A stretch of DNA of 64,000 nt from Selaginella moellendorffii. Lineage: Eukaryota > Plantae > Lycopodiophyta. Of this stretch, positions 5,309-47,719 are shown in pieces (the stretch's first letter is position 1; every line of letters starts with the position of its first letter). A program made the position numbers and the translations under genes. Where the stretch lies: positions 1 to 64,000 of the forward strand of contig NW_003314348.1 of the NCBI RefSeq assembly GCF_000143415.4, written 5' to 3'. The notes below the pieces were generated by a model, which saw only the letters and a program-made list of their open reading frames with translations, had not been told where the DNA came from and did no database searches.

Positions 5309-6660
5309 GACTTGTCTCTGGCTCGATCTCGGACCCGATTTCGGATCCGACTTCGGATTCGGTCTCGGACTCGATCTCAGACCCGATCTCGGACCCGATC
5401 TCGGACCCGACCTCGGACCCGACCTCGGACTCGGTCTCGGACCCGATTTCGGATCTCGGACTCCGTCTCGAACTCGGTCTCGAACTCGGACTCGAACTCG
5501 GTCCCCAAGTCGGTCTCGGATTCGATTCCGGACTCTATCTCGAACTCGGTCCTAGAGTCGGTTTTGGACTCGATCCTCGACTTGGTCCCATCCGATGAAC
5601 TCTTTGTCATTTCGGTCAAGCTTTTGGGGATCCTTTAGCCTACGACATCTCGGGGAGTCGGTTCCTTACAACTCCACCACCCATAGAAGAAGTTCGATGC
5701 CCACATCGAACGTCTCATTTTATCCTACGACTTGTTGACCATGTCTCCGGGGGCATCCCCCCACTTAGCGGTGTGCCTAAGTTAGCCTCCCCGGCCAAGA
5801 GCCCATGACAACGGAATATAGGTGTCCCTATACTCCTCACCTCACCACGCCCTAGTATGGGGTCGGGACTTGAACCCAGCCTTGCTTTACTAGGGGGTTG
5901 GGACTCGAACCCAACCTCCGTAGAATACGTCTACGGATTCGACATCCCCGCGGGGAGTCGGGCGTAGTGCCCTACGCCTGGTCGACCTATCCAACCCATG
6001 CTAATTAGCTTACCTTTGGCGCGCCTTCGGGTCCCAACATATGCCACTTGCTCAACTTTGCAAATTGATATTTTTAATTGAATTTTGCATAAGTACATAG
6101 AGTTCTGCCTTGCAGAAATTCCTCCGCTAGATCTCGCGCGTTCGCTAGGTTCTCCTCCGGTTCCTATGTTGCTTCGCAGTGTGGAAATCCTTTCCACTTC
6201 ACATGGAACTCTCTCACCTCGCGTCCTTGTCGCTTGCTCTTGCGCGCATTGAGGATGGCCTCGACTTCATATTCCTCTTCCCCTTGGATAACCTCAGGTA
6301 AAGGTCTCACCTGGTCCTTGCGAAGCGGGTCCTCAAAGTACAGCTTGAGTAAGTTCACGTGGAACACTGGGTGCATCTTCCCCATCTCTCGAGGAAGTCG
6401 GAGTCGGTAAGCCACTTTACTGATTCGTGCCTCAATCTCGTAAGGCCCCGCGAACCTGCTTAAGGAACTCAAGATCAATTCATTTACAGGAATACATGCA
6501 TCTTTACCTTTGGGTCAACTTTCGGCTGATCCCACTTGGTAGTCTGAGGTTCTTGGTGTTCAGCCACACCTTCTCCCCAGCTTGGAACTCTACATCTCGA
6601 CGCTTCTAGTTCGCGTATTTGGTTTGCCTTTGTTGAGCCCGTTCCAAGGAATCCCTCACT
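5309..6660 (-). repeat. Second copy of element A 3' end (LTR end, PPT, 3' UTR, chromodomain, integrase tail)
   Basis: Near-identical to 1-1286 at offset ~5375; LTR ends CTTACA at 5670. Confidence 0.88.
6100..6478 (-). pseudogene. Integrase GPY/F motif and chromodomain of element A
   Basis: FAGPYEI...HPVFHVNLLK...EYEVEAIL...FHVKWKGFPHCEAT*EPEENL (conserved W replaced by TAG). Confidence 0.9.
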
Positions 6661-6860
6661 GTTCCCAAGATCCCAAAGTCGTTCCATTATTGGCACTTTT
6701 CTATCCACCACCTCGTCTACAAGTTCACACATGAACTGTAATGGAGACCCATGTCTTCTCGACTTGCTACTCCCCAAGGATAGACCCACTCCTTGGACCT
6801 TCCGATGCCAACACTAGTGGTGATATACTTGAGCACCAATAAAAGTCGGACTAAGGAACA

Positions 6861-44302: not shown

Positions 44303-45581
44303 ATGGCGGAGGACGGCGACTACACGGCGGCACTGCGCGGCAGCAACAGCGATCAGTGGCAAGCATTGAAGCCTCCAGCTCCAGCGGCGCCTAGGTTTGG
44401 CGGCAATCCAGGAGCTGGTGGATCATCTTCTTCTTCCGACGGTGCGTGCTACCGCTGCGGGCAAGCTGGCCACTGGTCCCGCGATTGCTCGATGCGCCCG
44501 GCGGGAAATGCAAGTGGAATCCAGCCTCCTCCCGCGATGAATCTCTCCTCCAAGTCTTGCCCTTGTGGAGCTGGGATGTGCGTTCTTCGCACGTCCAATA
44601 CTGCCAAAAATCCCGGCCGCCAGTTTCTCACTTGTCCAGCTCCACAGGTAAGCTTCTTTCGTTCTTTTATGTTCTCGCTATAGAACGTAAAGTTCTTCGT
44701 GAAACCATTGGTTCTTTCACGGTTTCTTTAAGCTTGTCAACTTTCGCTAACACGTAGTTCTTGCTTGATAGGGCGCGAAGTGCAGCTTCTTCGAGTGGTG
44801 CGATGCCGCAGGAGCACCCTCTACGAATCAGCCACCGCAGGCACAGCAGCCCGGCGAGCCCGAGTTGAAATGCCGCAACTGTAACCAACCTTGCGTGGTA
44901 TTCACAGCCAGGACCGACAAGAACTCCGGCCGCCGGTTCTACAAATGCGTAAGAACCTGTTTTCTTGTGCTTCAAAGCCTTCGTTATCGATTGATGGATG
45001 GTGTAGAAAAACGAGGACTGCCACTTTTTCAAGTGGTGTGACGAAGCGTTCGCTCCCTCCTCGTCCCCCGGCTATAAGCCTCCTGCTGGCTATGGAGGCG
45101 CGAACTACACTGGAGCAGGATATGGAGGTGCTTCTCCCGGCCATGTGAACCCAGGTATCATCCACCACTACTCACCTCTAATAAATCATTTTGCTTAAGC
45201 AGGAGTATATGGAGGCCATGGAAACGTTTCCTCCGGCTATGGTGGTCCAGGTACCATTGAAACACAGAGAAAGCATTCACTTTCGAAACCTGTATAGGCT
45301 TTGGAGGGCCAAATAACACCGAAGGAGGATATGGCGGCCATGGCTACGGTGGCTCTGGTACCTCTCGACTCTCGTGAAAATGCTTTCAGTCCCAGGCTTT
45401 TTTGCAGGGCCAACATACTCGGGAGGATACGGGGCCCGTGGAAACGCCTCTTCCGGCTATGGACGCCCAGGTACCATCTCTCGACCGGTATAAAACTTCC
45501 AGCGGTTTACAAGCTCCTGCAGGCGATGGACACCCGAGCGCCAGTTATGGTCGTGGATACGGAGACTATGGAAACACGTAG
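44303..45581 (+). CDS. CCHC zinc knuckle + two GRF zinc fingers + Gly/Tyr-rich tail protein
   Basis: CYRCGQAGHWSRDC; CPCG..NPGRQFLTC..CSFFEWCD; C..C..NSGRRFYKC..CHFFKWCD. Confidence 0.85.
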
Positions 45582-45743
45582 CTTGCTGAAGCGATCTAGA
45601 GATATGGATTGAGAGAGGATAGTAGAGAGAAGAATGCTCGTCGAAAGTTTAAAGGTTTGCTGTTAATATTTTGCCCCGGTTTTAATGTATCGCATTTTGG
45701 TTCAATCTTCTCTGTTTTCTAGGGCTTTCCTTGTGAGGGAAAA

Positions 45744-46497
45744 ATGCAGTCTCTCCGAAGAGCGTGGTCATGGCTCAGGCGTCGCCAACAAGAAGACCAA
45801 GGGCCTCAGCTTTCGGCGGAGGACATGGGTTACTACACGGAGAATTCTTTCTTCTCGGCGCGTGAAGTTGCTGTGCTCTACAAAAAATTTCACGTAAGCA
45901 TTCTCTTCCGTCTCTGTTCTTGATGGATGGATTCGTTCTGTTTTTTCTTTTTCTTTTTCTTGTCCCCAGGCAATGTGCAAGGAGGGATGGAATGTGCTCA
46001 CTCACGAGGATCTAACGTCCATTGAGGAGATGCTCGCAAATCCATTTGCTCCGAGAATTCTCGAGCTTTTCAGCGAGGACGGAAGCGGGTTCCTGACTTT
46101 CGAGAAATTCGTAAACATGGCGGGCGTGTTCTCCGCAAAGTCGCCACCCGAGGTGAAAATGATATGGGCTTTTGCGCTGTGGGATTTCGACGGCGACGAC
46201 GTCATTGGAGATGGTAAGGCTCTCGACGTTTTTGGTCTCAAAGCTTTGCTTTAAGCTGTTTTAGAAAGCCTTGCAGACGATCTAAAGCAAGGGATCTCTC
46301 TCATCACGCAAACTGACGAAAGCTCCAATCCTTCGGCTCTTGCCACCCTTGGAGAAGAGCAGATTGACGAGGTCGTGTCCAGAGTCCTGCAAGAGATCGA
46401 TCCAAACAACTACGGGCTAAACTATGCGGACTTCCGAAAAGTGCTACAGAGAATGCCGGATTTCATCAATAACTTCCACATGAACTTTATTGCTTGA
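45744..46497 (+). CDS. Calcium- and integrin-binding (CIB)-like EF-hand protein, 3 exons, ~200 aa
   Basis: NPFAPRILELFSEDGSGFLTFEKFVNM..FSAKSPPEVK..AFALWDFDGDDVIGDDDL; C-terminal PDFINNFHM. Confidence 0.8.
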
Positions 46498-46712
46498 GTG
46501 CGTAAGTAGCTACACGTCAGCTTTTCCTCCTAATCTTTTGTTATTGCGAAGGGCCGTTCGTCATTTCTACAGTGGCCGCCACACAAAGGATACTTCGTCT
46601 GATCATACCCCGTCCTTGCGCCCCTTGCTGCCTAGTTGAAAGTATAAAGGGGACTTCTTGCAACGCTCCTCAAGCATATTTCTCTCTGTTCTTTCCATTG
46701 ATCCACAGACGC

Positions 46713-47719
<1,007 letters not shown>

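Follow-up and report, generated by a model that had tools for sequence, protein, structure and literature searches.

The window, a stretch of 64,000 nucleotides from the spikemoss Selaginella moellendorffii, carries at 45744-46497 on the forward strand a CIB-like gene of three exons, whose reading frame opens with ATG at 45744, passes two short introns with GT..AG borders and closes with TGA at 46495-46497. Coding exon 1 (45744-45893, forward strand; residues 1-50) encodes a basic, Trp-containing N-terminus (MQSLRRAWSWLRRRQQ) and then a CIB-like helix, YTENSFF...YKKFH. It is followed by the T-rich intron 1 (45894-45969, forward strand; 76 nt) and by coding exon 2 (45970-46213, forward strand), the most conserved part of the gene, which carries a degenerate EF2 (46072-46107) and, from 46183, the first 10 residues of the EF3 loop. 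In the form used by RefSeq isoform X2, intron 2 spans 46214-46264 and coding exon 3 spans 46265-46497, both on the forward strand. This exon begins with an inserted ESLA (46265-46276, including the last two bases of a split Glu codon), continues with a displaced Asp pair and a linker specific to the green lineage, and then encodes a short EF4 loop, DPNNYGLNYAD (46399-46431), and a C-terminal helix. The CIB motifs quoted in a preliminary description of this DNA are all present: YTENSFFSAREVAVLYKKF from 45834, NPFAPRILELFSEDGSG in exon 2 at 46039-46089, and PDFINNFHM in the C-terminal helix at 46456-46482.

That description had joined exons 45744-45893, 45970-46213 and 46277-46497 into a product of 204 residues. 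When exon 3 is entered at 46265, the product has 208 residues and is identical, letter for letter, to a RefSeq protein (P0156) titled 'calcium and integrin-binding family member 3 isoform X2 [Selaginella moellendorffii]', and the RefSeq CIB3-like model has its start codon at the same position, 45744. The window is therefore spikemoss DNA, and the CIB name was already in RefSeq.

Twenty public RNA runs contain the CIB-like stretch, and contigs from four of them (X1, X2, X3 and X10, each from a different study) were mapped on 44600-47600. Intron 1 is spliced out in runs X2 and X3, with 45893 bridged to 45970. For intron 2, the predicted donor (46213|46214) is the one used in RNA, and 46213 is joined to 46256 in run X2 and to 46265 in runs X3 and X10 (raw joints 46212>46255 and 46212>46264, cut +1). 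In run X1 the sole contig over this intron is unspliced, and acceptor 46277 was seen in none of the four runs. The intron ends in three tandem acceptor AGs, at 46254-55, 46263-64 and 46275-76, all of them in frame. The first or the second is used depending on the run; the third, unseen in RNA, is the conserved exon boundary. Entry at 46256 inserts seven residues (AVLESLA) just before the Asp pair and entry at 46265 inserts four (ESLA), so that the products have 211 and 208 residues, respectively, and 204 if 46277 is used. The CIB-like gene is transcribed and spliced in frame.

In run X1, the contigs covering 45865-46623 retain both introns and carry mismatches to the window, including those at 45900, 45903, 45927 and 46170. 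The last is the one coding difference seen between strains in this gene, and it is synonymous. These contigs probably represent pre-mRNA or DNA from a different haplotype or strain.

The gene lies between neighbours on the same strand, a GRF zinc-finger gene with a Gly-rich tail upstream and a globin (phytoglobin) gene downstream. In the GRF gene (45007-45581), exons of about 60-145 nt with Gly/Tyr-rich repeats alternate with introns of about 50 nt, all of which are spliced in RNA. Between the GRF and CIB-like genes lies an intron of 68 nt (45655-45722, forward strand), removed in runs X2 and X3 (joint 45652>45721, cut +2, that is, junction 45654>45723). The 5' leader also holds a two-codon upstream reading frame with its ATG at 45604, and once 45655-45722 is spliced out an ATG at 45634 comes into frame that would lengthen the protein by 14 residues (MLVESLKGFPCEGK). 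A further intron (46498-46551, forward strand; joint 46497>46552) begins immediately behind the stop codon and is removed in runs X2, X3 and X10; past it the contigs enter the 5' exons of the phytoglobin gene. RNA contigs across 45520-47600 run continuously through all three genes, which indicates overlapping UTRs or read-through transcription and does not imply a single transcript.

Family assignment and predicted fold

Compared with all solved structures, exon 2 alone matches Caenorhabditis elegans CALM-1 at E=1.3e-17 and CIB3 and CIB2 at about 1e-13; a calmodulin-calcineurin fusion chain reaches 1e-14, stand-alone calcineurin B about 1e-12 and CBL4 3e-4. Exon 3 alone reaches E<0.001 only with CALM-1, CIB2 and CIB3 (CIB1 about 0.02), in a match that spans the terminal PDF..F.H motif. 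Aligned by BLASTP with beetle CIB2, the protein is 32% identical over 187 residues, and the only gap within EF3 falls exactly at ESLA. Judged by its sequence, the resemblance of the Selaginella protein to CIB is far above chance. Pfam returned only weak EF-hand matches below the cut-offs, and no family-level match, for the single exons and for the whole protein.

An exhaustive HMMER search with exon 2 against 1.8 billion representatives returned 120 proteins below 1e-10. The top matches form one family with a near-invariant W-FA-WDFDGDD-IG--D segment. Among the non-green matches that were looked up, those with a source name are all holozoan CIB (Gallus and Channa CIB2, beetle CIB2, a crab CIB3-like protein, Amoebidium and Codosiga). 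No calcineurin B, CBL or NCS protein appeared among those checked of the best 150 matches or in the word-index searches, and P0123 and P0227, both from these 150, each match CIB first. Proteins of 1,200-2,800 residues with at least 20 EF-hands (P0002, P0042 and similar) also rank high against exon 2; we rejected them as relatives, since their repeats are generic and their score is the sum of many domains.

A profile of 19 aligned green members, searched against solved structures, separates the candidate families. CALM-1 scores 153 bits (9e-44), CIB2 133 bits (8e-38), CIB3 130 bits (7e-37) and CIB1 123 bits (9e-35), followed by calcineurin B at 98 bits (6.5e-27), CHP at 76 bits (3e-20), the NCS protein neurocalcin at 56.5 bits (2.5e-14) and CBL2 at 53.5 bits (2e-13). 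CIB-family members thus lie 25-55 bits above stand-alone calcineurin B, and CBL lies 100 bits below CALM-1. The alignment of the profile with CIB runs from end to end, PDF..F included.

Calcineurin B and CHP (p22) belong to the same superfamily and partly share the NP[FL]..R[IV] motif, and in every search calcineurin B ranks next after CIB. However, its match leaves out the C-terminal PDFxxxF helix, with some chains ending at about position 135 of 203, and exon 3 has no calcineurin B match. Calcineurin B has four working EF-hands, whereas EF1, EF2 and EF4 are non-canonical in the Selaginella protein, and we know of no calcineurin A in land plants. The plant CBL/SOS3 proteins, EF-hand sensors too, share the overall fold of the Selaginella protein (Foldseek TM 0.70-0.76) and have a C-terminal P-S-F helix in the equivalent place, but the FPSF phosphorylation motif is absent here (the sequence reads MPDFINNF) and the profile matches CBL2 and CBL4 only at 2e-13 to 3e-11. 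We therefore consider it very improbable that the gene encodes a calcineurin-B/CHP-like subunit of a phosphatase or ion exchanger, or a divergent CBL, even though 'protein phosphatase 3 regulatory subunit' is the annotation of the Klebsormidium orthologue and all of these families have one fold.

The AF2 model of the Selaginella protein (pLDDT 84) has a C-terminal helix predicted at residues 196-200. Its best fold matches in the PDB are CALM-1 in complexes with TMC-2 and TMC-1 and CIB3 with a TMC1 peptide (TM 0.79-0.83), with CIB2 also among the best. In the ESM Atlas, the top five clusters of the shape search are all CIB; the feature search gave equal scores to clusters of CIB, calcineurin B and CBL and did not separate these families. 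The PDF motif is near-invariant across the green family. The gene product is a small cytosolic protein with four EF-hands, a CIB fold and the CIB-type C-terminal PDFxxxF helix.

With CALM-1 and CIB2/CIB3 (auxiliary subunits of the mechanotransduction channels TMC-1/TMC-2 and TMC1/2, respectively), the protein has in common the four-EF-hand fold and a length of about 190-210 residues. It also shares with them the N-terminal aromatic helix Y..[CN][ST]FF, the segment NPF..RI...FSEDG.G.L.F, the degenerate EF2, the C-terminal PDF...F helix and, in the green family, the Asp at position 12 of EF3. Unlike these animal proteins, the green members have an extra linker of 10-35 residues between EF3 and EF4, a Trp in place of Tyr before EF3, and an EF4 loop one residue short. 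The Selaginella member differs further by its extra EF3 residues, four or seven in number. CIB1 (calmyrin/KIP), of the same family and fold, scores slightly under CIB2/3 and CALM-1; it carries a myristoyl group, and its EF4 has the canonical 12 residues.

CIB1-3 have an N-terminal Met-Gly myristoylation signal. This signal is absent in the Selaginella protein, which starts with MQSLRR, or with MLVESLK if ATG 45634 is used, and has a basic, Trp-containing N-terminal helix in its place. Some other green members begin with Met-Gly (Ginkgo) or with a Cys cluster, as in MVGCC (Coccomyxa), MSLCCC (P0160) and MNCDCC; such starts suggest lipid anchoring in some green lineages.

The preliminary description had called the protein CIB-type rather than CBL or calcineurin B, and the sequence, profile and fold searches bear this out. 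The Selaginella protein belongs to a branch of the CIB (calcium- and integrin-binding/calmyrin) family within the green lineage.

Distribution and descent in the green lineage

Members of this branch were found in liverworts (Marchantia, with Mp_1g13580, Riccia and Calypogeia), lycophytes (Diphasiastrum and Selaginella), the fern Ceratopteris and a single seed plant, Ginkgo. Among algae, they occur in the streptophytes Klebsormidium and Mesostigma and in the chlorophytes Coccomyxa (two species), Myrmecia, Trebouxia, Apatococcus, Bryopsis, Chloropicon and Pyramimonas. Word-index and exhaustive searches gave no match in angiosperms, conifers, named mosses, hornworts, Chlamydomonas or Mamiellales, an absence that is suggestive rather than proof given the limits that the word index and sequence length set on the searches. 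For angiosperms, this covers three word-index searches and the 10 non-green proteins, of the best 150 exhaustive matches, for which source names were looked up. CBLs, by comparison, are abundant in angiosperms, where no member of the green CIB family was found.

The view that no CIB was known in plants fails at the level of the databases. Besides the CIB3-like name in RefSeq, one Coccomyxa protein is labelled 'probable CIB2' and JGI records carry CIB names. Our literature search returned nothing on Mp1g13580 or on plant CIBs.

In unrooted IQ-TREE phylogenies, the green family and holozoan CIB are split with support of 100/100. The land plants group together (94/91), Selaginella pairs with Diphasiastrum on a longer branch than that of its partner, and the green-family tree broadly follows the species tree. 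This agreement, together with the deep split from holozoan CIB, points to vertical descent rather than contamination or gene transfer. Contamination, or recent transfer from an animal, has in its favour the animal-type name alone, and we regard it as ruled out by the host-type introns spliced in Selaginella RNA and the plant neighbours on the same contigs, in addition to the tree. The same short introns, neighbours and orthologue tree confirm the original judgement that this is a native plant gene. The CIB-like gene was inherited vertically from a green ancestor.

A JGI metagenome contig (L002; 197 kb, GC 38% over 12.3 kb) carries at 5518-6805 a complete CIB-like gene of the land-plant type; its three exons and intron positions are the same, and the Asp-12 of its EF3 is intact. 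Its source could be a bryophyte, possibly a moss, in which case it would fill the moss gap.

The preliminary description had also raised a possible link with flagellated sperm. The presence of the gene in Ginkgo, which has swimming sperm and is the sole match among seed plants, was counted in favour of such a link. On the other side, Coccomyxa, Chloropicon and Apatococcus, algae in which flagella are not known, have members of the family, Chlamydomonas gave no match, and spliced contigs of the Selaginella gene come from many ordinary runs of several studies. The link is weak, and finds no support beyond the general pattern of loss.

The EF-hands and calcium

CIB proteins bind metal through EF3 and EF4 but not through EF1 and EF2. 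In EF2 (SEDGSGFLTFEK), position 12 has no acidic residue, a feature shared with animal CIBs. Of the 19 aligned members, 17 have a canonical EF3 with Asp-12; the Ginkgo model ends before this position, and the expressed Selaginella isoforms contain the insert. No other aligned member has the four- or seven-residue insertion in this loop, which is also absent in insect CIB2. The EF4 loop has 11 residues in every green member, with Pro as the second.

The preliminary description had relied on the loop DFDGDDVIGDDD with its Asp-12. This loop requires acceptor 46277; the RNA contigs use 46256 or 46265, and RefSeq uses 46265. The expressed loop reads DFDGDDVIGD-ESLA-DD or DFDGDDVIGD-AVLESLA-DD. A family HMM built without Selaginella fits the 204-residue form best, at 251 bits against 243 and 240 for the other two. 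The position and phase of intron 2 are the same in the metagenome gene, whose acceptor yields Asp-12. Given this fit and the conserved intron position, the 204-residue form and its DFDGDDVIGDDD loop, not seen as RNA, look ancestral.

In most green members, calcium control would act through the canonical EF3 loop, DFDGDD-IG--D, with its Asp-12. The Selaginella protein, with four or seven residues added in EF3, may be mainly a structural subunit with little calcium response. Since EF3 is interrupted and EF4 is short, its metal binding is likely to be weak or altered, and calcium sensing is doubtful.

Another possibility is a relic gene on which constraint has relaxed: the fold would have been kept, but with EF3 damaged by the acceptor shift the protein would no longer sense calcium and might have little function left. 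The restriction of the insert to Selaginella among the aligned proteins fits this idea, as do EF-hand scores under the Pfam cut-offs and the longer branch relative to Diphasiastrum. Yet the reading frame is intact with all three acceptors in frame, transcripts occur in many runs from several studies, the sole coding difference seen between strains (46170) is synonymous, and the core CIB motifs are fully kept. We consider a relic improbable.

Candidate membrane partners

According to published reports, Coccomyxa, Klebsormidium, Marchantia, Physcomitrella and Selaginella each have a single TMC gene, and higher plants have none (PMC7003098; PMC12806904, which cites EFJ05970). Four of the five taxa (Coccomyxa, Klebsormidium, Marchantia and Selaginella) also have the CIB-like gene; for Physcomitrella, with its reported TMC, the searches gave no named CIB-like protein from any moss. 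The co-occurrence involves few and related taxa. From it, in four taxa, comes the idea that green plants may have a CIB-TMC module, a reasonable hypothesis that is apparently unpublished. Together with a conserved groove and PDF helix, the co-occurrence lends indirect support to a complex like that of animals, in which the CIB subunit binds the N-terminal helices and the TM2-TM3 loop of TMC.

In animals, D192 of CALM-1 pairs with R780 of TMC-1, and the positions of CIB2 relevant to deafness and TMC binding have been described (PMC9605866, PMC11861898). The green family keeps the equivalents of such positions, namely a Glu ahead of NPF, the Phe in LTFxxF, an aromatic residue ahead of DF and Ile as the eighth loop residue, and the Asp in its PDF motif corresponds to CALM-1 D192. 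Two of the three C-terminal salt-bridge residues of CALM-1 (R195 and R200) are replaced by Asn or Ser in the green family, so that these positions are not basic (cf. PMC9605866).

We suspect that the CIB-like protein may serve as a tightly bound cytosolic auxiliary subunit, as do CALM-1 and CIB2/3 in animals. In this scenario, its hydrophobic groove would clamp amphipathic cytosolic helices of a membrane partner, for which the single-copy TMC channel kept by the same species would be the best candidate. The proposal of an auxiliary subunit with TMC as its preferred partner is plausible but somewhat doubtful in our estimate.

Animal CIB1 works with many kinases and receptors, and it was reportedly first described as KIP, an interactor of DNA-PKcs. 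A true CIB protein in Selaginella could likewise have partners other than TMC, such as DNA-PKcs or kinases and transporters that were lost in flowering plants. DNA-PKcs is found in chlorophytes, charophytes, bryophytes, lycophytes including Selaginella, ferns and gymnosperms, and not in angiosperms (PMC10419180). All named holders of the CIB-like gene fall within this range, and because DNA-PKcs too is absent in angiosperms, the pattern of CIB-TMC co-occurrence is not specific. The profile score of CIB1, close to those of CIB2/3, and the lack of conservation at the C-terminal Arg contacts with TMC-1 are also compatible with a different partner. However, DNA-PKcs is much more widespread than the CIB-like gene seems to be, occurring in conifers, gnetophytes, mosses, hornworts and Ostreococcus, and the narrower distribution of TMC (Coccomyxa being the only reported chlorophyte) fits the gene better. 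In addition, both sequence and fold are matched best by CALM-1 and CIB3 in their TMC-bound structures. A partner other than TMC therefore seems to us rather unlikely, if worth serious consideration.

The best explanation overall, which we hold tentatively and at a little under an even chance, is that the gene is a vertically inherited green CIB whose product is a putative auxiliary subunit of a membrane partner. A bolder version would place the origin of the TMC-CIB complex before that of animals. The complex would then persist as a module of two genes in several green algae and non-angiosperm land plants (liverworts, lycophytes, ferns and Ginkgo), where it would form a calcium-regulated or mechanosensitive channel, and the acceptor shift in Selaginella would have rewired or removed its calcium control. 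This version is speculative, and we think it unlikely as a whole.

TMC channels with their CIB subunits form the core of the transduction apparatus for hearing and touch in animals, and what is at issue is the role that such a complex had before animals arose. New here are the distribution of the family, the detail of splicing and EF-hands, and the pairing hypothesis; the CIB label of the gene was already in RefSeq. In flowering plants no CIB-like relative was found, and TMC is likewise unreported. A conserved CIB branch extends across green algae and non-flowering plants, including taxa with a reported single TMC gene, and Marchantia Mp_1g13580 and the TMC of the same species offer a concrete gene pair in a tractable plant.
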